NCBI GenBank assembly: GCA_028826165.1
Contig: JAPDFW010000070.1
Span: 1,587,859-1,651,858, forward strand
DNA length: 64,000 nt
Direction of reading: 5' to 3'
From: Anaeramoeba ignava BMAN
Taxonomy: Eukaryota > Protista > Anaeramoebae
The position numbers and the translations under genes are program-made. The notes beneath the pieces are model-generated. The model had not been told where the DNA came from and searched no databases. It saw only the letters and a list, made by a program, of their open reading frames with translations. Position 1 is the first letter of the stretch, and every line of letters begins with the position of its first letter. This document shows, in pieces, positions 2,330 to 57,747 of this stretch.

Positions 2330-2380
2330 ATTTAAAATGAAAAAAATGAAAAATGAAAAATGAAAAAAATGAAAAATGAA
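2330..2380 (-). promoter_or_regulatory. Reiterated TTTTCATTTT initiator-like motif upstream of ATG (representative instance)
   Basis: The same motif lies within ~10-120 nt upstream of most start codons in the window, on the sense strand. Confidence 0.5.
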
Positions 2381-3025
2381 TTTTGAATTTGATTTTAATA
2401 TTGAATTTGATTTTAATTTTGAATTTGATTTTGATTTTGAATTTGATTTTAATTTTGATTTTTAATTTGATTTTGAATTTGATTTTGAATTTAAATTTGA
2501 TTTTAATTTTGATTTTAATTTTGATTATTTTAATTTTGAATTTTATTTTGAATTTGATTTTGAATTTTGATTTTGATTTTGAATTTGATTTTGATTTTGA
2601 TTTTGATTTTGAATTTTGATTTTGATTTTGATTTTGATTTTGATTTTAATTTTGAATTTTGATTTTGAATTTGATTTTGAATTTGATTTTGATTTTGAAT
2701 TTAATTTTGATTTTGATTTTGATTTTGATTTTGATTTTGATTTTGATTTTGATTTTGATTTTGAATTTTTAATTTTGATTTTGATTTTGATTTTGATTTT
2801 GATTTTGATTTTGATTTTGATTTTGATTTTGATTTTGATTTTGAATTTGATTTTGAATTTGATTTTGATTTTAATTTTGATTTTTAATTTTGATTTTGAT
2901 TTTGATTTTGATTTTAATTTTGATTTGATTTTAATTTTAAATTTTAAGTTTTTCAAGTTAATTTTAATTTTGAATTTGATTTTGAATTTTAATTTTGATT
3001 TTGATTTTGAATTTGATTTTGATTA
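2381..3025. repeat. (TTTTGA/TTTTAA/TTTGAA)n hexamer array downstream of metallophosphoesterase copy 1
   Basis: Visible tandem hexamers; they explain the spurious ILILIL, FDFDFD and KIKIK ORFs. Confidence 0.95.
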
Positions 3026-4297
3026 TTAAATTTTAAGTTTTTTCAAAGTTAATTGAATTAAATTTCCACTATCTTTAGAAGGAACTTCTTGAATCATACA
3101 AGAATATTTCCAAGCAATAGAACCAAGATGAAAAGGAGGAATACTTGCAATTTTATCCTTTTCATCAAATTTAAAAATATGAGTATGACCAATTAAAATA
3201 AAATCATCATCTGTAATAAATCTTGAATAAAAATGTCTAAGACCACAAATAAAAGGTTTAACTTCTGTACTTGTTAATTTATAATTATTTCCTCCATCAT
3301 GTGACATAACTAGAGATTTAATTTGAGTTTGAATAAAATTTGTTGATTGAAAAACTCCTTGATTTTTGATTTGATTTTTGAAACTATTTTGATTTTGATT
3401 TTGATTTTGATTTTGATTTTCATTCTCATTTTGATTTTGATTTTGATTTTCATTTTCATTCTGATTTTGATTTTGATTTTCATTTTCATTTTCATTTTCA
3501 TTTTCATTCTCATTTTCATTCTCATTTTGATTTTCATTTTGATTTGTATTTCCAACTGAAATATTATTATGTGGAGTAATTTTCATAAAATAATGTTTTG
3601 TGATTTTAATAAATTTCTTTTGTTCTTTTGTTAATTTTTCTTTTATTCTTAAAACTTTTCTTCTATCATGATTTCCACCAATTATATAAGTTGGAAGTTG
3701 AAATTTTAAAAACTCATTCATAATATCAAGACAATAATTTAAATCACTACAAGTTGAATGGAATAAATCACCCAAAATTATAATTTGATCTGGTTTTTCT
3801 TTTTGGATCATTTCTCCAAGAAATTTAAATGTTGCTGGAATTTTGGAAATAGGAAACCACGACTCTTCTACATTATTCAAATGCATATCAGCAATAACAA
3901 ATGCATTCCATGGTTTATTTCCTTCAGTTTTGATTTCCTTCATTGTGCCTTCATTGAAACGAAGATTCATGATTTTTCCTTCAATTTTTTTCGAACTCGA
4001 TTTTTTCTTTGTTTTTTCTTCTGGTTTTTTTCTTGTTTCCTTTGATTCATGTTTTTTGGATTCTATAGATTTTTTTGCATTTGGTGGATTTGAATTTTTT
4101 CCTTTTGGAGGAGGAGGAATATTTGAGTTTGGAGGTGTACTTTTTTTTGGATTTGGTGGATTTGGAATTTTATTTTGTTCTTCCGTTTTATTTTGTTCAA
4201 TGGATTGTTGTTTTTCTTCTTTTTCTTTTTTGCTAGATGAATTTGTTTTATGAGAATGATGTTTTTTTTCTTTGTTTTTTGAATTATCTGAACCCAT
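3026..4297 (-). CDS. Calcineurin-like metallophosphoesterase, copy 1
   Basis: Motifs ADMH, ILGDLFH, GGNHD, SHD and IGHTH; K/P-rich N-terminus; NQ/NE run inside the domain. Confidence 0.88.
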   Translation of the reverse strand: MGSDNSKNKEKKHHSHKTNSSSKKEKEEKQQSIEQNKTEEQNKIPNPPNPKKSTPPNSNIPPPPKGKNSNPPNAKKSIESKKHESKETRKKPEEKTKKKSSSKKIEGKIMNLRFNEGTMKEIKTEGNKPWNAFVIADMHLNNVEESWFPISKIPATFKFLGEMIQKEKPDQIIILGDLFHSTCSDLNYCLDIMNEFLKFQLPTYIIGGNHDRRKVLRIKEKLTKEQKKFIKITKHYFMKITPHNNISVGNTNQNENQNENENENENENENENENQNQNQNENENQNQNQNENENQNQNQNQNQNSFKNQIKNQGVFQSTNFIQTQIKSLVMSHDGGNNYKLTSTEVKPFICGLRHFYSRFITDDDFILIGHTHIFKFDEKDKIASIPPFHLGSIAWKYSCMIQEVPSKDSGNLIQLTLKKLKI

Positions 4298-4396
4298 TTT
4301 TTAATCAAAAAATAAAAAATGAAAAATGAAAATTGATTTTGTTTGTTCATAAAAAAAATCACAAATAATATTTTGGATTTCTTATGAAATTTTTAT

Positions 4397-5050
4397 TTTG
4401 AATTTGATTTTGAATTTTAATTTTGAATTTGATTTTGATTTTGATTTTGATTTTGATTTTGATTTTGATTTTGATTTTGATTTTGATTTTGATTTTGATT
4501 TTGATTATGATTTTGATTATTTTGAATTTGAATTTAATTTTGATTTTGATTTTGATTTTGATTTTGATTTTGATTTTGATTTTGATTTTGATTTTGATTT
4601 TGATTTTAATTTTGATTTTAATTTTGAATTTGATTTTGATTTTGATTTTAATTTTGATTTTAATTTTGATTTTGATTTTGATTTTGATTTTGATTTTGAT
4701 TTTGATTTTGATTTTGATTTTGATTTTGATTTTGATTTTAATTTTGATTTTGATTTTTTTTAATTTTGATTTTGATTTTGATTTTGATTTTGATTTTGAT
4801 TTTGATTTTTATTTTTGAATTTGAATTTAATTTTGATTTTGATTTTGATTTTAATTTTGATTTTAATTTTGAATTTGATTTTGAATTTGAATTTGAATTT
4901 GATTTTGATTTTAATTTTAATTTTGAATTTGATTTTGAATTTGATTTTGATTTTGATTTTGATTTTGATTTTGATTTGAATTTGAATTTGATTTTGAATT
5001 TGGATTTTAATTTTAATTTTGAATTTTGATTTTGATTTTAATTTTGATTA
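4397..5050. repeat. (TTTTGA)n hexamer array between the tandem phosphoesterase genes
   Basis: Visible tandem hexamers. Confidence 0.95.
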
Positions 5051-6374
5051 TTAAATTTTAAGTTTTTTCAAAGTTAATTGAATTAAATTTCCACTATCTT
5101 TAGAAGGAACTTCTTGAATCATACAAGAATATTTCCAAGCAATAGAACCAAGATGAAAAGGAGGAATACTTGCAATTTTATCCTTTTCATCAAATTTAAA
5201 AAGATGAGTATGACCAATTAAAATAAAATCATCATCTGTAATAAATCTTGAATAAAAATGTCTAAGACCACAAATAAAAGGTTTAACTTCTGTATTTTTT
5301 AATTTATAATTATTTCCTCCATCATGTGACATAACTAGAGATTTAATTTGAGTTTGAATAAAATTTTGTTGATTGAAAAACTCTTTGATTTTTGATTTGA
5401 TTTTTGAAACTATTTTGATTTTGATTTTGATTTTGATTTTGATTTATATTTTGATTTTGATTTTGATTTTGATTTATATTTTGATTTTCATTTTGATTTT
5501 GATTTTGATTTTGATTTTGATTTTGATTTTGATTTTGATTTTGATTTTGATTTTGATTTTCATTTTCATTTTCATTTTCATTCTCATTTTGATTTTCATT
5601 TTGATTTGTATTTCCAACTGAAATATTATTATGTGGAGTAATTTTCATAAAATAATGTTTTGTGATTTTAATAAATTTCTTTTGTTCTTTTGTTAATCTT
5701 TTTTTTATTCTTAAAACTTTTCTTCTATCATGATTTCCACCAATTATATAAGTTGGGAGTTGAAATTTTAAAAACTCATTCATAATATCAAGACAATAAT
5801 TTAAATCACTACAAGTTGAATGGAATAAATCACCCAAAATTATAATTTGATCTGGTTTTTCTTTTTGGATCATTTCTCCAAGAAATTTAAATGTTGCTGG
5901 AATTTTGGAAATAGGAAACCACGACTCTTCTATATTATTCAAATGCATATCAGTAATAACAAATGCATTCCATGGTTTATTTCCTTCAGTTTTGATTTCC
6001 TTCATTGTGCCTTCATTGAAACGAAGATTCATGATTTTTCCTTCAATTTTTTTCGAACTCGATTTTTTCTTTGTTTTTTCTTCTGGTTTTTTTCTTGTTT
6101 CCTTTGATTCATGTCTTTTGGAATGTTTGGATTTATTTTCATTTGGTGGATTTGAATTTTTTCCTTTTGGAGGAGGAGAAATATTTGAGTTTGGAGGTGT
6201 ACTTTTTTTTGGATTTGGTGAATTTGGAATTTTATTTTGTTCTTCCGTTTTATTTTGTTCAATGGATTGTTGTTTTTCTTCTTTTTCTTTTTTGCTAGAT
6301 GAATTTTTTTTATGAGAATGATGTTTTTGATGTTTATGATGTTTATGATGTTTATGATGTTTTTCTGAATCCAT
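5051..6374 (-). CDS. Calcineurin-like metallophosphoesterase, copy 2 (1-nt frameshift near 5365)
   Basis: Near-identical to copy 1. ORFs 5343-6374 and 5051-5332 join if the extra T is removed (aaattttgtt here vs aaatttgtt in copy 1). Has an HHK-repeat N-terminus. Confidence 0.85.
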
Positions 6375-6467
6375 TTTTTTTTTTAATTAAAAATAAAAAT
6401 ATAAAAAGAAAATTAAATTTTTTTTTTTCATTTTTTTATTTGCTTTTTCAAAAATAATAAATTTAAA

Positions 6468-23989: not shown

Positions 23990-25863
23990 TTAATTAGCAA
24001 ATTTTTCTGCAATTTCAAGTGAAATTTCTTTTGCTAATCCAATATAAGTTTCTGGAATAAGTAATTCTTTAATTTGTTCTTCTGAAAAAATTTGTTTAAT
24101 TGTTTCATCTTCTCTTAAAGCTTTTTCAAAATCTTTTTCAAAACTTAAAACTCTTAAAAGCTAAAAAAATAAAAATTAAATAAAATTAAAATTTAATAAA
24201 ATAAAAAAAATCGGATAAAAATTATTTTTACTTCATGTGCTTTTTGTCTTCCAATTTTTGAAGTTAATTCAATCATTAATCTTTCAGCAAGTTGTTTTCC
24301 TTTTTAAAATTAAATTAAATTAAAAAATTAAAAAAAAAGGAAAAGTTTTTCTTAAATTTTTTCTTTACCTTTTAAAAAATGAAGATTTCTTTCAATAGAT
24401 TCTTTATTAACATAAAGTTTAGAAAGAATTTGAGTTAAAGAAAGTAATTGGAAATGATATAAAATAACAGAAGTTGAAACAGATACTCTTTCAACAACTG
24501 AATTAGTTAAATCCCTTTCATGTTCTAAAGCAATAGTTTCAATTAAAGGATTAAGTTGAGCATGAACCAATCTAGTAATTCCACAAATTCTTTCAGATTT
24601 ATGAGGATTCTAATTAAAAAAAAAATAAATAAAATAAATTAGGGAAAAATGAGAACAATTTTTTTGAACTAGCAAAAAAATTTTTTTACTCTTTTTTGAG
24701 GCATTGTTGAACTTCCAACTTGTTTTGGAATAAATTCTTCAGAAAATTCATCAATTTCAATTCTTTGTAAATTTCTAATTTCTTTTGCAATTCTTTCAAG
24801 AACACAAGAACCAGTTGTTAAAGAAAAAACAAAATCAACAAGATGAAGACGAGTAAGAACTTGAGTTGAAATTGGGGCTGGTTCAAGTCCTAAAAACAAA
24901 TTCAAAAACTTAATATTTTTTTTTAAAAAAAAAATAGAACAAACCAAGTTCTTTAAGAGCTATTGTTTGAACATCTTTTGTTCCTAAAGCTGCGAATGTA
25001 CCAATTGCTCCTCCCAATTTAGCTTAATTTTTTAATTTAATTTTTTAATTTAATTTTTTAATTTAATTTTTTAATTTAATTTTTCAATATAATTTTTCAA
25101 TATAAAATACCAATATTAATTGTTGTTCTTTTAAGATGATTTTCTGCAACACTAATTTCATATAAAAAATTAGCAAATTTAAAACCAACTGTAAGAGGAA
25201 TTGCATGCTAAATTTTAAATTGAATTTTTTAATTCAAATTTTTAATTCAAATTTTTTAATTCAAATTTTAATTCAAATTTTTAATTCAAATTTTTAAATC
25301 GGAATTCTATAAATGTTTACTTGACCATGAGTTCTTCCAATTTGAACAACATCTTGATTTTCTAAAATTAAATTTTTTAAAGTTTTTTTTAAATCTAAAA
25401 TTGATTGTAAAAGAATGTTTTTAGCTTGAACTAATTGCAAAGCTTGAACAGTATCATTAATATCCTGACTAGTGCATCCAAAATGAACATACTCTCCATA
25501 TTTCTCTGATCTTTCTGCAATTGCTTTAACCATTGCCATTATATCTTTTGAGAAAAAAAAAGCAAAAAATTTTTCGATTTTAAAAAAAAAAAAGCAAAAA
25601 TTATTTTTTAAATTAATTTCCGTTTTTTTGTTTTTTTAATTTTTACCGTGATGAATTTCTGATTCAATTTCTTTTACTCTTTCTAATAAAATTGGTTCTT
25701 TTTCAATTAATTCTTTCATAACTGAATATGTTTCTTTTGGAATTTTTCCAATTTCTCCTAATGCTTTTAAAATTGTTAATTCAACTTCAATTTGTAATTT
25801 TAATTTGTTTTCTGCTGAAAAAATTTCACTAATTGGTGTTTCATATCTTGAAATCCAATCCAT
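23990..25863 (-). CDS. purB: Adenylosuccinate lyase (archaeal-type); 8 exons
   Basis: HHDIMA, YVHFGCTSQDI.DT, GRTHGQHA, GGAIGT, QVGSSTMPQKRNP..SE, HERDLTNS, GRQKAHE and PETYIG. Confidence 0.95.
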
Positions 25864-25963: not shown

Positions 25964-27429
25964 TCACATGAAAAAACATTTTTTTTCAGAATTTCCAAAT
26001 TCATAAGTGTGAGTAAATGATTGATTCACAAGAAGTTCTGTATCAACATTAATTTTGTTTAACATCAAACACATTATTGGACATCTCAAAATACAATCTT
26101 CAGTTATTTCTCTTGCAACATCAACAGTTTGATCAGTTCCAACATCAAAATGAAAAGACAAATGAGGAATAACCTCATTTTGATTAAGTCCAAATTCAGC
26201 ATTAATATTTTCATCAAGTTGTGATTCAATAGAAAGATGTTCTAATTGAAACCCTCTTAAAGAAGAAGCATAAGCATAATGGGTTAATAAACAGCAACTG
26301 ATTCCGGCAAGAAAATATTGAACAGGAAAAGGATAACTTGATTCACCTCCAAGTAAAATTCTTGAATCAGTAAAAAATTTGTGAGTTTTGCCATTTCCAT
26401 AAGTAATTAATGCTGAAAATTGTGGACCTTCGTTTTTATCACAAATCCATTCTCCTTCAATAATACATGGAACTATTGATTCATTTGGGTTTCTTTTTAA
26501 ATAATCTCTTGATTCCAATACTTGATCCATATTGATGTTATTGATTTTTTTCGTATTTGTTTCCTTTTTGGGTGTTCTTGTTTGAACAGTTGTTTTTGTT
26601 GTAACTGAAATTGAATTTTCTGCCATAAAAGTAATTGGACATCTTTTTTTGGTTAGTTCAAAAATTTCTTCTAATTCTTCTTTTGAATTATGATCGGAAA
26701 AAACTGAAAGGATAATTGAAAAAGAGTTGATAGGCTTTTTGGACATATCAACTCCAGTAACTTTGAGAAATTCAAATTCAAGTGTTGATCTAATTTTTAG
26801 TTTCTTAATTAAGATCCCTTTTAAACTACATAAAGTTGCAAATGTTCTTTTTATTTATTTTTTTTAAGAAAAATTTAAATTTTAAATTTAGAAAAGAATA
26901 GAAAAATAATTTAAAAAATAATTTTACGAAGTAAACATTGCAGCAAATCTAAATATTAAAAAGAAAAAAAAAAAGGAGAACAAATTAGAAAAAAAAAAAT
27001 TTTATTTTTTTCTTTTTTTTTATTTTACGAAAAATTGCAAATATCTAAAGGATTTGGTGCATTTCCTTTTCCTCCAGTCATTTTTGAATTATCAACAAAA
27101 AGATCTTGAGATCCTTTTTCAAAAAAAAGCTCTAAAAAAAAGAAGAAAAAAAAAAAAGCAAAAAATTTAAAATTGAAAAGAAAAATTTTTTTTTTGTAAT
27201 TGAAAAAAATTTTTTAAATTAAAAATTCTTTCAGTTTTAAAAATATAATAAAAATTGAAAAGATTTTTTTGAATTTGATAAATTTACTTGCATTAAATTG
27301 TCTCTTTCCTTTTGTTAACCAATCAAAACTAAGATTGACTTGTTTAATAGAATCATTTTCATTTTGTTTAACTTCTTCAATAGCTTTATTTAATTCTTTT
27401 AAATTAATATGATTTAAAATTGAAACCAT
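25964..27429 (-). CDS. Tandem (two-domain) OsmC/Ohr-like protein with C-terminal CaaX (CFFM), copy 1; 4 exons including a 21-nt microexon at 26928-26948
   Basis: Domain 1: D..MTGGKGNAPNPLD..SFAAM..KRCPI. Domain 2: D..LGGESSYPFPVQYFLAGISCC..LRCPI. Ends KKCFFM*. Confidence 0.82.
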
Positions 27430-39118: not shown

Positions 39119-41991
39119 TCAATTCATTTCAATAAATGGTTTTAAAATTTTAATTTCATTTTCAATTGAAAATATTGTTGATCCAAAAAAATCATTAAAA
39201 TTTTTATTTGAATTTAAAGCTTTTCTTTCTCCTTCTTTCATTAAACACATTTTAATTTTTTCAATAAAAGATTGAGCAGAAGTCCAAAAAATTTTACGAG
39301 CTTCAATACATAATCTTTAAAAATATAAATATAAATAAAAATAAAAATATAAAAATATAAAATTTAAATGAAAATAATTTTTTTTTACTTGATTGATGTT
39401 GTAATTTCTTCAGAACTCCTATTTAAGTTTATAAAAAAAAAAACCAAATATTATTTAATTATTTAAAGATTTATTTATTTATTTACTTATTTATTTACCA
39501 TAAACTACTATTATTATTAATTGAACGTTCAATTACTTCTTGTAAAAAATAAGTTGTTGTACAAAATTGCCAAGAAACACTGCATAATAATTGGATTAAT
39601 TGATAAAGGAACCAATCCAAACTAAATATTTATCAATTTCATATTTTTTTTAAATATTTATCAATTTAATTTAAATATATTTCATGTTTTTTAAATATTT
39701 ATCAATTTCATTTAAATATATTTCATGTTTTTAAATATTTATCAATTTCATTTAAATATATTTCATGTTTTTTTAAATATTTATCAATTTCATTTAAATA
39801 TATTTCATATTTTTTTAAATATTTATCAATTTCATTTAAATATATTTCATGTTTTTTTAAATATTTATCAATTTAATGCTGTTTAAATATTTATATTTCA
39901 TTTTTTTGTTTAAATATTTATATTTAATGTTTTTTAAATATTTATCAATTTAATGTTTTTGTTTAAATATATTTCTTGTTGTTTAAATATTTATATTTCA
40001 TTTTGTTTAAATATATTTAATGTTGTTTAAATATATTTCATTTTGTTTAAATATTTATCAATTTAATGCTGTTTAAATATATTTCATGTTGTTTAAATAT
40101 TTATCAATTTCATTTTGTTTAAATATTTATCAATTTAATGTTGTTTAAATATTTATATTTCATTTTGTTTAAATATATTTCATTTTTTTGTTTAAATATT
40201 TATCAATTTGTTTAAATATATTTCATGTTTTTTAAATATTTATCAATTTAATGTTGTTTAAATATTTATCAATTTAATGTTGTTTAAATATTTATCAATT
40301 TAATGTTGTTTAAATATTTATCAATTTAATGTTGTTTAAATATTTATCAATTTAATGTTGTTTAAATATTTATCAATTTAATGTTGTTTAAATATTTATC
40401 AATTTAATGTTGTTTAAATATTTATCAATTTATTGTTTAAATATTTATCAATTTAATGTTGTTTAAATATTTATCAATTTAATGTTGTTTAAATATTTAT
40501 CAATTTAATGTTGTTTAAATATTTATCAATTTAATGTTTTTGTTTAAATATATTTCTTGTTGTTTAAATATTTATATTTCATTTTGTTTAAATATATTTA
40601 ATGTTGTTTAAATATATTTCATTTTTTTGTTTAAATATTTATCAATTTAATGTTGTTTAAATATATTTCATGTTGTTTAAATATTTATATTTCATGCTGT
40701 TTAAATATTTATCAATTTAATGTTTTTTAAATATTTATCAATTTCATATTTTTTAAATATATTTCATTTTTTTGTTTAAATATTTATCATTTTGTTTAAA
40801 TATGTTTTAAATATTTATCAATTTAATGTTGTTTAAATATTTATCAATTTAATGTTGTTTAAATATTTATCAATTTATTGTTTAAATATTTATCAATTTA
40901 ATGTTGTTTAAATATTTATCAATTTAATGTTGTTTAAATATTTATCAATTTAATGTTGTTTAAATATTTATCAATTTAATGTTTTTGTTTAAATATATTT
41001 CATGTTTTTTAAATATTTATCAATTTAATGTTGTTTAAATATATTTCATGTTGTTTAAATATATTTCTTGTTGTTTAAATATTTATATTTCATTTTTTTT
41101 AAATATTTATCAATTTCATGTTTTTTTTTAAATATTTATAAATTTAATGTTGTTTAAATATATTTCTTGTTGTTTAAATATATTTCATGCTGTTTAAATA
41201 TTTATCAATTTCATATTTTTTAAATATTATATTTCATTTTGTTTAAATATATTTCATTTTGTTTAAATATTTATCAATTTCATGTTTTTTAAATATTTAT
41301 AAATTTAATGTTGTTTAAATATTTATCAATTTAATGCTGTTTAAATATTTTTCATGTTGTTTAAATATATTTCATGCTGTTTAAATATATTTCATGCTGT
41401 TTAAATTTTCATATAAATTTACTCAAAAACAATATTAATTTTTTCTTTTGGACTCATTAAATTTTGTTGTTCATTTTCTTTTTCAGTAAATGTTTCTGAA
41501 GTTGATTCAACCATATCAGATTCCATTTCAATTTTTTCAAATTCACTTTCAGTTTCATTATCTTTTTCTTTTTCTGAATCTTTTTCATTAGTTTTTGATT
41601 TTTCTCTTATATTTGGAGATGAATCTTTTTCAGATTGATTTGATTGGTATAAATACTTTTCTTCTCGTGGAATTTTTTTTGATTGATATTCACAAATTTT
41701 AAAGTTTGATTTAATATGTTGTAAAAGATCTGTAATTAAAATATCAATTCTGGAAAGTTGTTCAATTCCATAATTTGAGAAATCTGTAAATTGTTTAGTT
41801 AATTGTTTATTATTTAAAATTTCCTTAACTTTAAAAGAAGAAGAAAAGAAAAGAAAAGAAAAGAAAAGAAAAAAAATTATTTTAGTTTTTGTTTGATTTT
41901 CAATAAATTATTTTTTTATAAGAAATGCACTTGTTAAACTTTGTTTTTCACAAAAAGAAAATAAATCCACAATAAAATTACGAAGAGACAT
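39119..41991 (-). CDS. Hypothetical protein absent from the ORF track; 5 exons (~41931-41991, 41423-41828, 39499-39621, 39389-39418, 39119-39314)
   Basis: Exons splice in frame through GT-AG introns: MSLRNFIVDLFSF..KEILNNKQL..DLDWFLYQLIQLL..WSSEEITTSIKLCIEARKIFW..EMN*. Confidence 0.7.
39622..41422 (-). repeat. 1.8-kb intron filled with ~26-mer satellite (plus strand TTTAAATATTTATCAATTTAATGTTG)n
   Basis: Tandem ~20-27-nt variants. Confidence 0.9.
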
Positions 41992-45262: not shown

Positions 45263-45338
45263 TTTTTAAAAAAGAAAAAAAATGAATTTTTAAAATTAAA
45301 AAAAAAATTTATTTTTTTTCATTTTTTTCTTTTCAAAA

Positions 45339-47024
45339 ATGAATGAAATTATATTCTTTGGTTTAAATCAATATCCAATTATTTTCAAAAATGAATCAAA
45401 TAAAATAATAAAACCAATTCAATTTAAATTTGAAAATGAAAATGAAAATGAAAATGAAAAACAAATTAAACAAATTTCAACAGGTTATTTTGGAACAATT
45501 TTCCTTTTTAAAAATGGAAAAGCAATAGAATATTCAAATGAAAATGATTCAAATCAAAATCCTGAAAAAATCCAAATTGAAAATATTCAAAAAGTAACTG
45601 CTGGTGAACAAAATGAAGCTATTTTAACATTAGAAGGAAATGTATTTGCAAAAGGAAATAAGATTAATTCAAATAATTCATATAAATTTATCAATATTTC
45701 ATCATTAATTGAAGATCCAAATGATAGAATAATTCAAGATATTGTTTCTGGAAATGGTTCAATTTACTTATTAACTTCAAATCAAAATGCTTATGGAATT
45801 GGTTTAAATCAATATGGTCAACTTGGTTTTGATTCTAAAATAATTTATCAAACACAAAAACCAATTTTAATGATGAAAAATGTTTCTAAAATATTTTCAG
45901 GAAATACTTCATTTCATGTTTTTCTTTTAAGTTCAAATCAAGAATTATTTGGATGCGGTTGGAATGAATATAATCAACTTGGATTAGGAGAATCAATAAA
46001 AGAAACAAAAATCCAAAAATTAACCAAAATCCAAAATATTCCAAAAGGCAAAATAATTGATATTCAAAGTGGATATTTTCATTCAATAATGTTGATTGAA
46101 AATGAAAATCCAAAAAGAAAACTTTATTCATGTGGATACTGAAATCAAATCATCTTTATTTGAAAATGATGATAATATTCTTGATTTTTCTGTTGGAAAT
46201 GCTCATACTTTGATTTTAACTCAATTCAAAATTAATAGGATTTGGAACTGGAGATACAAATGATCAATTAATTCCAATTCAAATTGAACTTCCTAAATTA
46301 AGATTTAATGAAAATATTTCTAATTATCATATTTCTTGTGGATATCAAAATTCATTTCTTTATTATTCTCCTCCTTCTTTTTCCAATCTTGAAGAAGATT
46401 TGATAAAATTATTTGAAAGAAAAGAATTTTGTGATATTTCATTTAAAACCAAAAATGGAGAAATAATTGAAGCTCATAAATTAATATTGAAATATAGATT
46501 AAATCAAAATCAAAATCAAATTGAAAAACTTCAAGAAATTATTTCAAAAATCAATTAAAGAATCAAATCAAATATTTGAAATGATTTATTCAAACAGAAT
46601 AATAAATCCAAAATTATATTCTGAAATTAAAGAAATTATAAATTCAAATGAAAAAATTGAAGAAACAATGAAAAGAATTTATTTAAATGAAAATGAAAAT
46701 GAAAAAGATTTTATTATTGAAAGAAAAGAAAAACAATATAAATTTCCAAAATTAATATTAATAATGAGAAGTGAATTATATCGAGGAATGTTTTTATCTG
46801 TAACAGAAGATAAATCAAATAAAGTTACAGATTATAGTGAATTAAGTAATAAATCATTTCAAATATTTGAATATTGGATTTATTCAAATCAAATTAAAGA
46901 TGAAATTGAAATTACACAAGAAATAATTAATGAAATTCAAATTGGAATTGATTATTTTCAATTAAATCAAACAAATCCAAATTTATTTGATTTATTAATT
47001 AACAAATTTAATAATCAAAATTAA
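45339..47024 (+). pseudogene. RCC1-repeat + BTB protein, disrupted by internal deletions and frameshifts
   Basis: Paralogue of 53527-55322. Lacks ~47 nt at ~46136 (giving an early TGA) and ~24 nt at ~46245, with further small indels. Confidence 0.75.
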
Positions 47025-47565
47025 AATCAAAATTAAAATTAAAATTAAAATTAAAATTAAAATTAAAATCAAAATTAAAATTAAAATCAAAATTAAAATT
47101 AAAATTAAAATCAAAATTAAAAATCAAAATTAAAATTAAAATTAAAATCAAAATTAAAATTAAAATTAAAATCAAAATTAAAATTAAAATCAAAATTAAA
47201 AATCAAAATTAAAATTAAAATTAAAATCAAAATTAAAATTAAAATTAAAATCAAAATCAAAATTAAAATTAAAATTAAAATTAAAATCAAAATTAAAATC
47301 AAAATTAAAATTAAAATTAAAATTAAAATCAAAATTAAAATTAAAATTAAAATCAAAATCAAAATTAAAATTAAAATCAAAATTAAAATTAAAATTAAAA
47401 TTAAAATTAAAATTAAAATTAAAATTAAAATCAAAATCAAAATTAAAATTAAAATTAAAATTAAAATTAAAATTAAAATTAAAATTAAAATCAAAATTAA
47501 AATCAAAATTAAAATTGAAATCAAAATTAAAATTAAAATTAAAATCAAAATTAAAATTAAAATTA
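47012..47565 (+). repeat. (AAAATT/AAAATC)n hexamer array following RCC1-BTB copy 1
   Basis: Visible tandem hexamers. Confidence 0.95.
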
Positions 47566-53166: not shown

Positions 53167-53526
53167 AAATTTTTTGAAGTTATTTGAATTGCTATTTTGT
53201 TTTGTTTTGTTTTGTTTTTGAAAGGAAATTTAAATCAAAAAAGAAAAAGAAAATTTAAATCTTATTTTAATAAAAATTAGGAAAAAAAATTTGTTTACTT
53301 TCTTCTAACCAACATTTTGAAAAGAAAAAAATGAAAATGAAATAAAAAGAAAAAAAAATTAATAAATAAATTAATAAAAATGTTTGCTGATTCATTTTTT
53401 TCGTTGAGTCCTTGATTATTGAATAAAATCAAAATTAAAATTAAAACTATAATTAAAATTAAAATTAAAATCCAAAATTATTTTTTTCATTTTTTTCATT
53501 TTTTTCTTTTTTTTATTTTTCAAAAA

Positions 53527-55322
53527 ATGAATGATTGTTTATTTTTTGGTGAAAATAATCTTGGTTGTTTTAAAAATAAACCAAATAAAATAACAAAACC
53601 AATTCCAATTCCAATTCAATTTGAAAATGAAAATGAAAATGAAAATGAAAATGAAAACGAAAAACAAATTAAACAAATTTCATCAAGTTTTTTTTCAACA
53701 ATTTTCCTTTTTAAAAATGGAAAAGCAATAGAATATTTAAATGAAAAATATTCAAAACAAAAACCTCAAAAAATCCAAATTGAAGAAAATATTCAAAAAG
53801 TAAAAACCAATTTTGATAATATAGCTATTTTAACAATAGAAGGAAATGTATTTGCCAAAGGAGAAGATATTAATCCAAAAAATCCATATAAATTTATCAA
53901 TATTTCATCATTAATTGAAGATACAAATGATAGAATAATTGAAGATATTGTTTCTGGATATCAAACAATTTATTTATTAACTTCAAATCAAAATGCTTAT
54001 GGAATTGGTTCAAATTATTATTCTCAACTTGGTTTTGATTCTAAAACACTTCCAAAAACAGAAAAACCAATTTTAATGATGAAAAATGTTTCTAAAATAT
54101 TTTCAGGAATTTGCTCAAATCATGTTTTTCTTTTAAATTCAAATCAAGAATTATTTGGATGTGGTGATAATCAAAATGGTCAAGTTGGGTTAGGAGAATC
54201 AAGAAAGAAACAAAAATCCAAAAATTAACCAAAATCCAAAATATTCCAAAAGGAAAAATAATTGATATTCAATGTGGGAATGCTCATTCAATAATGTTGA
54301 TTGAAAATGAAAATGAAGATGAAAATCAAAATCCAAAAAGAAAACTTTATTCATGTGGAAGCTATCGATATAATGGACTTGGCAAAGGTGAAATTACTTA
54401 TGAATTTACTGAAATCAAATCATCTTTATTTGAAAATAATAATATTGTTGGTTTTTCTGTTGGAAATGCTCATACTTTGATTTTAACTTCCAAAGGGAAA
54501 GTGATTGTTTTTGGATCTAACTATTATGGTGAATTAGGAACTGGAGATACAATAAATCAATTAATTCCAATTCAAATTAAACTTCCTAAATTAAGATTTA
54601 ATGAAAATATTTCCAATTATCATATTTCTTGTGGATATTGGAATAATTCATTTCTTTATTATTCTCCTCCTTCTTTTTCCAATCTTGAAGAAGATTTGAT
54701 AAAACTATTTAGAAGAAAAGAATTTTGTGATATTTCATTTAAAACCGAAAATGGAGAAATAATTGAAGCTCATAAATTAATATTGAAATATAGATTAAAT
54801 CAAAATCAAAATCAAATTGAAAAACTTCAAGAAATTATTTCAAAAAAATCAATTAAAGAATCAAATCAAATATTTGAAATGATTTATTCAAACAGAATAA
54901 TAAATCCAAAATTATATTCTGAAATTAAAGAAATTATAAATTCAAATGAAAAAATTGAAGAAACAATTAAAAGAATTTATTTAAATGAAAATGAAAATGA
55001 AAAAGATTTTATTATTGAAAGAAAAGAAAAACAATATAAATTTCCAAAATTAATATTAATAATGAGAAGTGAATTATATCGAGGAATGTTTTTATCTGTA
55101 ACAGAAGATACTTCTAATAAAGTTACAGATTATAGTGAATTAAGTAATAAATCATTTCAAATATTTGAATATTGGATTTATTCAAATCAAATTAAAAATG
55201 GAATTCAAATTACACAAGAAATAATTGAAGAAATTCAAAAAGGAATTGATTATTTTCAATTAAATCAAACAAATCCAAATTTATTTGATTTATTAATTAG
55301 GAAATTTAATAATCAAAATTAA
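53527..55322 (+). CDS. RCC1-repeat + BTB protein (1-nt frameshift in the A-run near 54205)
   Basis: RCC1 motifs GIGSNYYSQLG, GCGDNQNGQVG, VGNAHTLILT and FGSNYYGELGTG; BTB motifs CDISF..IEAHKLIL and KLILIMRSELYRGMF. Confidence 0.85.
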
Positions 55323-55730
55323 AATTAAAATTAAAATTAAAATTAAAATTAAAATTAAAATTAAAATTAAAATTAAAATTAAAATCAAAATTAAAATCAA
55401 AATTAAAATTAAAATTAAAATTAAAATTAAAATTAAAATTAAAATTCAAAATTAAAATTAAAATTAATTGGAAAACAAAATTAAAATTAAAATCAAAATT
55501 AAAATTAAAAATCAAAATTAAAATTAAAATCCAAATAAAAATCAAAATTAAAATTAAAATCAAAATTAAAATTAAAAATCAAAATTAAAATCAGAATTAA
55601 AATTAAAATTAAAATCAAAATTAAAATTAAAAATCAAAATTAAAATCAAAAATTAAAATCAAAATTAAAATTAAAATTAAAATTAAAATTAAAATTAAAA
55701 TTAAAATTAAAATTAAAATTAAAATTAATT
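55310..55730 (+). repeat. (AAAATT/AAAATC)n hexamer array following RCC1-BTB copy 2
   Basis: Visible tandem hexamers. Confidence 0.95.
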
Positions 55731-55908
55731 GGAAAACAAAATAAGAGAAAATAATAAAAAAGATCAGAAAATGGGGGTCAAAATTCTTTGCGAAAAATTC
55801 AATTTTTTTTCATTTCATTTTTTTTTTTCTTTCTTTTTTTGAGTTTTTTTAATCAAAAAATTTCATTTTGGCTTTTTTTTTTTGCTTTTTATTTTTTCAA
55901 TTTTAAAA

Positions 55909-57747
55909 ATGTTTTCAACACTTAATCACATTCATGTAAATGAATTAAAAAACACATTTGAAAAATTAAAAAAAAATGAAAGGAGTTCAATTAAAAAAGT
56001 AAACCTTTCTTTTGATTGGTTAACAAAAGGAAAAAAACAATTTAATGCAAGTAAAATAATTTTCTTTTATTTTTCTTTTACAATTTTTTTTTTTTGATTA
56101 AAAATTATTTAATCTCTTTTTTTTTTAGCACTTTTTTATGAAGAAGGATCACAAAATCTATTTGTTGATAATCCAAAAGTAACTGGAGGAAATGGAAAAG
56201 CACCAACTCCTTTAGATATTTGCAATTTCTCGTAAATTTTTAGAAAATTCAAATCAAAATAAAAATCAAAATTAAAATTAAAATTAAAATCAAAATCAAA
56301 ATCAAATTCAAAATCAAAATTTAAATTAAAATCAAAATTAAAATAAAAATCAAAATCAAAATCAAAATCAAAATAAAAATCAAAATCAAAATCAAAATCA
56401 AAATCAAAATCAAATTCAAATTCAAAATCAAAATAAAAATTAAAATTAAAATTAAAATCAAAATTTAAATCAAAATCAAAATCAAAATCAAAATAAAAAT
56501 CAAAATCAAAATCAAAATTAAAATCAAAATTAAAATCAAAATCAAAATCAAAATCAAAATTAAAATCAAAATCAAAATCAAAATTAAAATCAAAATTAAA
56601 ATTATTAAAATCAAAATCAAAATCAAAATCAAAATCAAAATCAAAATCAAAATCAAAATCAAAATTAAAATTAATATTTTCATTTTATTTTTCTTTGTTA
56701 GTTTTGCAGCAATGTTTACTTCGTAAATTTATTTTCAATTTAATTTCAATTTATTTTTAATTTATTTTTAATTTATTTTCAATTTAATTTCAATTTATTT
56801 TTAATTTATTTTCAATTTAATTTCAATTTAATTTCAATTTATTTTCAAAAAAAAAAAAAAAAAGAACTTTTGCAACTTTTTGTAGCTTGAAAGGAATTCC
56901 ACTTAAAAAATTAAAAATTAGATCAACACTCGAAATTGAATTTGCTAAAGTTACTGGTGTTGATATGTCTAAACCTCCAATAAACTCTTTTTCAATTATT
57001 CTCTCAGTCTTTTCAGATCATAATTCAAAAGAAGAATTACAAGAAATTTTTGAACTAACCAAAAAAAGATCTCCAATTATGTTTATGGCTCAAAATTCAA
57101 TCCCAGTTACAACAAAAGCATCAATCCAAATGAAACCCTCAAAAAAGGAATCAAATTCGAAAAAAATCAATAACATCGATATCGAAGAAATATTGAAAAC
57201 GAGAGAATATTTCAAAAAAAACCCAAGTGATTCAATAATTCCCTGTATTATTGAAGGAGAATGGATTTTTGATAAAAATGAAGGTCCACAATTTTCTGCA
57301 CAAATTGGATATGGAAACGGAAAGAATCTTAAATTGTTTACTGATTCAAGAGTTTTCCTTGGAGGTGAATCAACCTCACCTTTTCCTATTCAGTATTTTC
57401 TTGCAGGAATTAGTTGCTGTTTATTAACTCACTATGCTTATGCTTCTTCTTTAAGAGGTATCCAATTAGATCATCTTTCTATTGAATCACAAATCGATGA
57501 AAATATTACTGCAGAATTTGGACTCAATAAAAAAAGTATTATTCCAGAAATCTCTTTTCATTTTGAAGTTGGAACTGATCAAGGTATTGATGTTGTTAAG
57601 GAAATAACTGAAGATTGTATTTTGAGATGTCCAATCACCTATCTTTTGTTAAACAATTTTAATGTTGATACAGAACTTCTTGTGAATCAATCATTTGCTC
57701 ATACTTTTGAATTTGGAAATTCTGAAAAAAAGTGTTTTTTGATGTGA
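55909..57747 (+). CDS. Tandem OsmC/Ohr-like protein with C-terminal CaaX (CFLM), copy 2; 4 exons including a 21-nt microexon at 56702-56722
   Basis: Paralogue of 25964-27429 with the same intron positions; LAGISCC..LRCPI in domain 2; ends KKCFLM*. Confidence 0.82.

Follow-up and report, generated by a model that had tools for sequence, protein, structure and literature searches.

The window analyzed here, a stretch of 64,000 nt from the nuclear genome of Anaeramoeba ignava with a G+C content of 18.9%, contains two related genes which code for proteins with two OsmC domains. Their features are listed in Table 1. Copy 1 corresponds to a public A. ignava protein of 382 amino acids, annotated as 'hydroperoxide reductase' (P0001, 100% identity in a word search with the last exon). 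Copy 2 corresponds to another public protein of 382 amino acids from the same contig (P0002), with 76–77% identity to P0001. The in-frame translation of copy 1, exon by exon, gives residues 1–47, 49–81, 83–88 and 90–382 of P0001, and the codons split by introns are those of K48, S82 and S89. The translated exons of copy 2 are likewise found at residues 1–47, 49–81, 83–88 and 90–382 of P0002. Exons were searched singly, and the public P0001 sequence was the query in all whole-protein analyses.

Table 1. Features of the two double-OsmC genes, with their positions in the window.
Feature	Position	Strand	Description
Copy 1 exon 1	27288..27429	-	Residues 1-47 and first base of K48
Copy 1 exon 2	27029..27131	-	Residues 48-82; GG-x-G-x-x-P-x-P loop of unit 1
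Copy 1 exon 3	26928..26948	-	21-nt microexon; Met86 (26936-26938) at the peroxidatic Cys column
Copy 1 exon 4	25964..26846	-	Residues 89-382 and stop: rest of unit 1, linker of ~10 residues, unit 2, tail
Copy 1 Cys158	26639..26641	-	Second Cys position of unit 1
Copy 1 OsmC unit 2	26024..26551	-	Residues 188-363; catalytically intact half
Copy 1 Cys274	26291..26293	-	Peroxidatic Cys column of unit 2
Copy 1 Cys344 in R-C-P	26081..26083	-	Resolving Cys column of unit 2
Copy 1 CaaX box C-F-F-M	25967..25978	-	K-K upstream; disordered tail of ~19 residues
Copy 2 exon 1	55909..56050	+	Same intron positions as copy 1
Copy 2 exon 2	56129..56231	+	Same intron positions as copy 1
Copy 2 exon 3	56702..56722	+	21-nt microexon; Met at the peroxidatic position
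Copy 2 exon 4	56865..57747	+	Contains OsmC unit 2
Copy 2 CaaX box C-F-L-M	57733-57744	+	End of exon 4

The introns of both genes interrupt identical codon positions, and all of them (6/6) have GT-AG ends. Their lengths are different, 156, 80 and 81 nt in copy 1 vs. 78, 470 and 142 nt in copy 2, and so are their sequences. The duplicated stretch extends little beyond the gene. When both copies are compared, dN/dS is 0.32 for exon 4, 0.16 for the unit 1 part and 0.43 for unit 2. Therefore, both halves are under purifying selection, which is stronger on unit 1, the 'dead' half as described below. Judging from their sequences, we consider both copies as real, selected genes, because of the shared GT-AG intron positions, the dN/dS values and the match to public annotations.

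Other features are also found in the window. A long microsatellite of the AAAATC type fills intron 2 of copy 2 (56236–56680), and a similar array is located 9 kb upstream (46882–47348). Further segmental duplications link 45313–47437 with 53499–55742 and 2379–4350 with 4419–6431 (87% and 91% identity). A stretch of about 1.8 kb (39623–41421) is internally repetitive. Downstream of copy 1, exon open reading frames outline an intron-rich gene on the minus strand (23990–25863). The tRNA and Rfam searches of the 64-kb window gave no match.

Two OsmC units per protein had been proposed from the sequence. In fact, the Pfam OsmC model (PF02566) matches twice in each of the proteins P0001–P0004, and the two halves of P0001, scored singly, reach 43.0 and 38.1 bits, both above the cut-off of 27.5. 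According to a profile built from 77 single-domain relatives, the units of P0001 cover residues 3–177 and 188–363. The best NCBIfam model for this protein is NF041052, 'OsmC-related (seleno)protein', with 89.5 bits over two stretches, under the cut-off of 95 bits; a Promethearchaeota tandem protein (P0017) scores 101.1 bits with the same model. We know of no member of this OsmC subfamily whose activity has been measured.

The two units have different cysteines. Among 93 single-domain relatives, the peroxidatic column contains Cys in 92% of the sequences, and at the second column, in the R-C-P motif, 71% of them have Cys and 26% have Ser. Unit 2 of P0001 has a cysteine at both family positions, Cys274 in ISCC and Cys344 in RCP, as anticipated by the original prediction. 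Unit 1 departs from the two-Cys pattern, again as anticipated: Met86 is found at the peroxidatic column, and the second position is variable, as copy 1 has Cys158 there and copy 2, like two further paralogues, has Ser. None of the 12 Anaeramoeba representatives has a peroxidatic Cys in unit 1.

The fold was predicted by AlphaFold2 from an alignment of 67 rows, 20 of them tandem proteins. The mean pLDDT is 94.2 and the pTM is 0.93, and all five models reach a pLDDT of at least 93.6. This job supersedes an earlier one with a four-row alignment, which was mediocre (pLDDT 69.6). The model consists of one compact body followed by a disordered tail, only residues 374–382 have a pLDDT below 50. Unit 1 superimposes on GSU2788 from Geobacter sulfurreducens (2opl_A) with a Z of 12.6 and an rmsd of 2.0 over 171 residues. 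GSU2788 is the best structural match for unit 1 and also the best PDB sequence match for unit 2. Proteins of the GSU2788/NF041052 group share with P0001 the N-terminal helix, the GG-x-G-x-x-P-x-P loop, the peroxidatic Cys column and the R-C-P motif. Unlike P0001, they are single-domain prokaryotic proteins, with neither a tail nor a CaaX box.

Canonical OsmC/Ohr proteins are obligate intertwined homodimers. Such chains, represented by E. coli OsmC, Xylella and Pseudomonas Ohr and Trichomonas vaginalis OsmC, share the fold and the two-Cys logic with P0001, but they have only about 140 amino acids and form homodimers with two sites. They align with a Z of 8–10 to pieces spread across residues ~22–363 of the model, in both halves. 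Such an alignment requires that one canonical subunit be reconstituted from parts of the two halves, as happens in intertwined dimers. Residues 3–363 as a whole match a cluster of 69 bacterial proteins in the ESM Atlas, which are tandem OsmC proteins of 363 amino acids (TM 0.83/0.87). The predicted structure is thus a pseudo-dimer, an intertwined fold of two units within one chain, where the relative placement of the halves comes from the prediction and from the structural matches. The fusion into an asymmetric pseudo-dimer which had been suggested agrees with this fold, with the alignment of canonical chains to both halves and with the presence of a single complete cysteine site. The OsmC protein of Trichomonas is located in the hydrogenosomal matrix (PMC10648710).

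The original prediction considered only two paralogues. A six-frame scan of the A. ignava genome with PF02566 finds seven double-OsmC loci: two in contig C60, one in C114, two in C127, one in C75 and one in C55. The last exon begins at the same residue in all seven cases, therefore the last intron is older than the family. The two genes in C127 (49471–57504, L010 and L011) are about 8 kb apart in opposite orientation. Each of them is 98–99% identical to P0004, so they are nearly identical to each other: This pair is a very recent inverted duplication.

The genome also contains single-OsmC genes, four adjacent loci arranged head to tail in contig C87 (G000:C87:251344–257371, L001–L004). An exon has been read out for one of them, it codes for a single domain with no CaaX box. 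The seven double and four single loci add up to eleven, the same number of PANTHER 'hydroperoxide reductase' genes listed in a table of the A. ignava genome paper (PMC11550330). In articles on Anaeramoeba, OsmC is mentioned only as an enzyme which detoxifies peroxides and has a putative presequence for the hydrogenosome, and the single genes in C87 are probably the ones discussed there as hydrogenosomal. No such presequence is found in P0001: Residue 1 of copy 1 is already the start of the N-terminal helix of unit 1, and P0001 aligns from residue 1–3 with the start of bacterial relatives of 173 amino acids, with no targeting extension or signal peptide.

An exhaustive profile search among 1.84 billion representative sequences gave only 323 matches with E ≤ 0.001. 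The full-length double matches are those of the A. ignava representatives and of six proteins from A. flamelloides. In these six, the double module is placed behind a long N-terminal extension. In two of them, P0015 (956 aa) and P0047 (892 aa), the extension contains an RGS domain (83–88 bits). The Cys pair is retained in P0015, whose last residues are CSLM, and P0047 has lost both the peroxidatic Cys and the box. The extensions of P0014, P0018, P0041 and P0056 have about 165–190 residues and look like coiled coils; the one in P0014 gave no match in Pfam or NCBIfam. Among these four proteins, only P0014 has a CaaX box (CDIM). Altogether, four of the six A. flamelloides proteins have no box, and three of those also lack the peroxidatic Cys of unit 2. 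Another candidate, P0177 (765 aa), which combines Rheb with a double OsmC, was rejected as a merged model of two neighboring genes, probably an annotation artefact. An A. flamelloides gene coding for a Rheb GTPase which ends in CVIL (P0178) directly adjoins the double-OsmC gene of P0056, and the joint model of 765 amino acids comes from one assembly. Finally, P0019, P0106 and P0119 were considered as possible poly-OsmC proteins, but Pfam finds no OsmC domain in them, they are bias hits.

The C-terminal ends predicted for the two copies, K-K-C-F followed by F or L and a final M, are indeed KKCFFM in P0001 and KKCFLM in P0002. In the predicted gene model, the codons of the CaaX box and unit 2 belong to the same exon. 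All seven A. ignava loci have a C-x-x-M end: CFFM, CFLM, CNLM, CNMM (twice), CSMM and CRLM. With the two A. flamelloides proteins mentioned above, P0014 and P0015, nine carriers are found. All nine have Cys at position -4, a hydrophobic residue (F, L, M or I) at position a2 and a terminal Met, as in CaaX substrates. Lys or Arg is present just upstream of the box in eight of them, the exception is P0015. The C-terminus is also accessible, being part of the disordered end of the model. A terminal Met in a CaaX box selects farnesyltransferase. Considered as a sequence, the tail has the signature of farnesyltransferase substrates, and its basic patch is short. It resembles K-Ras4B, which ends in C-V-I-M, in its Cys at -4, hydrophobic a2, terminal Met, upstream lysines and disordered linker. 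The cargo is different, a laterally acquired peroxidase and not a GTPase, and the basic patch is short, with only 2–3 residues.

All carriers descend from a single fusion, so their nine boxes are not independent occurrences. C-x-x-M might then be a chance inheritance from one ancestor, with no function, in a soluble cytosolic OsmC protein. We consider this highly improbable. The 15 residues before the box have diverged to a mean identity of only 14%, but Cys(-4) and Met(-1) do not vary among eight distinct representatives. Besides, the carriers belong to two species and their units are only about 20–25% identical. Selection on the box is the reading we prefer, and the enzymes required to process it are encoded in the A. 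ignava genome, which agrees with the CaaX box as it was first proposed. The prenyltransferase beta subunit (PF00432) is found at three loci, the best one with 330 bits, together with PPTA alpha repeats (PF01239), Rce1-like proteases (PF02517) and the ICMT methyltransferase (PF04140), all of them above cut-off. Farnesyltransferase alpha and FPP synthase are listed for A. ignava in the tables of the genome paper (PMC11550330).

The presence of the box goes along with an intact unit 2: The peroxidatic Cys of this unit is kept in all nine proteins with a box and has been lost in three of the four without it. This pattern might also be expected if the cysteine in the tail were a third, mobile redox cysteine, which would reach the active site of unit 2, pass the disulfide to a reductase and not be a lipidation site. 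In some thiol oxidoreductases, the tail at the C-terminus does act as such a relay, and the tail of these proteins is long and disordered. Such a relay seems very unlikely to us, as it leaves unexplained why the terminal Met is invariant, why the Cys is placed exactly three residues from the end, and why there is a hydrophobic a2 and a basic patch. No tail of this kind is found in the prokaryotic relatives or in independent tandem proteins either. We therefore keep lipidation as the preferred role of the tail.

The nearest relatives of these proteins are OsmC-like proteins with 171–181 amino acids from Thermodesulfobacteriota ('Deltaproteobacteria'), Nitrospinota, Chloroflexota and several archaeal MAGs. 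The subfamily is also present in MAGs of Thermoplasmata, Bathyarchaeia and Nitrososphaerota. In the tree, the shortest paths to outside sequences lead to proteins of 173 amino acids from uncultured Thermodesulfobacteriota/'Deltaproteobacteria'. From these comparisons, the putative donor is resolved to the 'prokaryotic' level. The symbionts of Anaeramoeba include Desulfobacteraceae. The lateral acquisition which had been suggested agrees with the prokaryotic nearest relatives, and the genome paper already lists the OsmC genes of Anaeramoeba as lateral transfers, with a total of six or more acquisitions (PMC11550330, Supplementary Note 2 and Fig. S17M). Both the lateral origin and the size of the family are already published.

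We have also built trees with the separate units. In a mixture-model tree with 135 rows, unit 1 was split into two groups. In a reduced LG+G4 tree with 83 rows, where the longest branches were left out, the unit 1 sequences of the two species group in a single clade (SH-aLRT 97.8) and their unit 2 sequences in a second one (97). Since each of these clades spans both species, the fusion and the loss of Cys in unit 1 predate the split between A. ignava and A. flamelloides. When the 23 Anaeramoeba units are forced into one clade, the likelihood is better than that of the free quick search by 23.5 log units, with a p-AU of 0.81. The best tree found therefore favors one acquisition from a prokaryote, followed by one internal duplication before the species split.

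The original prediction also considered this architecture as possibly new. This has to be divided: Tandem OsmC proteins have arisen independently elsewhere, and what appears to be new is limited to the conserved CaaX tail and to the dead half being always unit 1. Tandems of the same subfamily are found in Promethearchaeota MAGs (P0016 and P0017, with 455–581 amino acids; a cluster of 11), in a Chitinophagales MAG (P0104), in metagenomic sequences (P0065, P0145, P0101 and P0085) and in a marine eukaryotic transcript (P0127, 414 aa). Like the Anaeramoeba proteins, they have two units of one subfamily per chain, and the ESM Atlas cluster resembles the Anaeramoeba proteins in overall shape; unlike these, none ends in CaaX. 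When the units are placed separately in the tree, those which belong to one protein are sisters, with a support of 100 for Promethearchaeota and P0127, 99 for P0101, 98 for P0145 and 96 for P0065. They are therefore the result of separate duplication events. In the Promethearchaeota tandems P0016 and P0017, the peroxidatic Cys has been lost in unit 2, not in unit 1, which looks like a convergent reduction to one site. The N-terminus of P0127, M-G-S-L-I-S-T-M-G-C, has a pattern (M-G-x-x-x-S and a nearby Cys) of N-myristoylation and palmitoylation, which may represent convergent membrane anchoring of a double OsmC by a second route.

Our searches of the literature have found no description of tandem OsmC domains and no paper linking OsmC with CaaX or prenylation, the co-mentions being unrelated. 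The text and supplements of the genome paper mention no CaaX box on OsmC (PMC11550330). The CaaX box on OsmC and the conserved dead half appear to be undescribed.

The explanation we favor, with moderate confidence, is that copies 1 and 2 are two of seven genes coding for a cytosolic thiol peroxidase of the OsmC family, derived from prokaryotes, with a single chain, one active site and a CaaX anchor. A prokaryotic OsmC-like gene coding for about 173 amino acids, of the 2opl/GSU2788 family, would have been acquired. It would have been duplicated head to tail in the stem lineage of Anaeramoeba, would have gained introns and would then have multiplied. The two halves would fold as the intertwined dimer which the OsmC fold normally makes from two chains. 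Only the site in unit 2 (Cys274 and Cys344) would have been kept, with unit 1 as a structural partner. The flexible tail of about 19 residues, with its basic patch and C-x-x-M end, would be farnesylated, then cut by the Rce1-like protease and methylated by ICMT. The farnesyl tail would hold the enzyme at the cytosolic face of a membrane, where organic hydroperoxides, probably those of lipids, would be reduced with thioredoxin-type or dithiol reductants.

Not all parts of this explanation are equally firm. Peroxidase chemistry is what we infer, given the conserved Cys pair and the superfamily to which the protein belongs. Its conserved lipid-anchor signal makes a site of action at a membrane probable, and the hydroperoxides of membrane lipids are a reasonable guess as its substrate. 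We have also considered whether the enzyme might fill an empty niche, in a cell with no other enzymes against lipid peroxides. This is not borne out: Several peroxiredoxins and a GPx-like gene are also present in the A. ignava genome, so an unfilled niche or a special need for a membrane peroxidase is not apparent.

The presence of these other peroxidases also fits a different role, in which the protein would be prenylated and bound to a membrane but would act as a redox or peroxide sensor, as a relay or as an enzyme for other thiols, rather than as a bulk scavenger. The subfamily is biochemically uncharacterized, the double module of A. flamelloides is found behind RGS domains (P0015, with CSLM, and P0047) or behind long extensions which look like coiled coils, and the peroxidatic Cys is missing in several of these fusions. 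Nevertheless, we think this role rather unlikely for the A. ignava proteins, in which there is no signalling domain. A set of seven genes, each with its Cys pair intact, suits a detoxifying enzyme whose dosage matters, and the characterized members of the OsmC/Ohr superfamily are peroxidases. A membrane-bound peroxidase is still our preferred reading. A more daring proposal, to which we give little credence, is that the double OsmC with a farnesyl tail is also a membrane sensor of peroxide or oxygen, and that its fusion to RGS in A. flamelloides couples the oxidation of the one Cys pair left to heterotrimeric G-protein signalling. If it were true, a strict anaerobe could sense oxygen and flee from it, and the stand-alone forms of A. 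ignava would represent the ancestral, enzyme-like state of the module.

In summary, these genes are a clean case of a prokaryotic gene made eukaryotic: It has gained introns, with a 21-nt microexon among its exons, it has been doubled, it has lost one of its two sites, it is present in seven copies and it carries a lipid-anchor signal. The CaaX signal is a purely eukaryotic feature on a gene which came from prokaryotes, and no prenylated peroxidase of the OsmC family has been described in the literature we have searched. Tandems with one dead half have arisen repeatedly and independently, in Anaeramoeba and in Promethearchaeota, which suggests that a dimer needs no more than one site. Anaeramoeba houses oxygen-sensitive symbionts in membrane pockets which are open to the outside. 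If the double OsmC is prenylated, peroxides would be removed right at the membrane of an anaerobe which has only occasional contact with oxygen.
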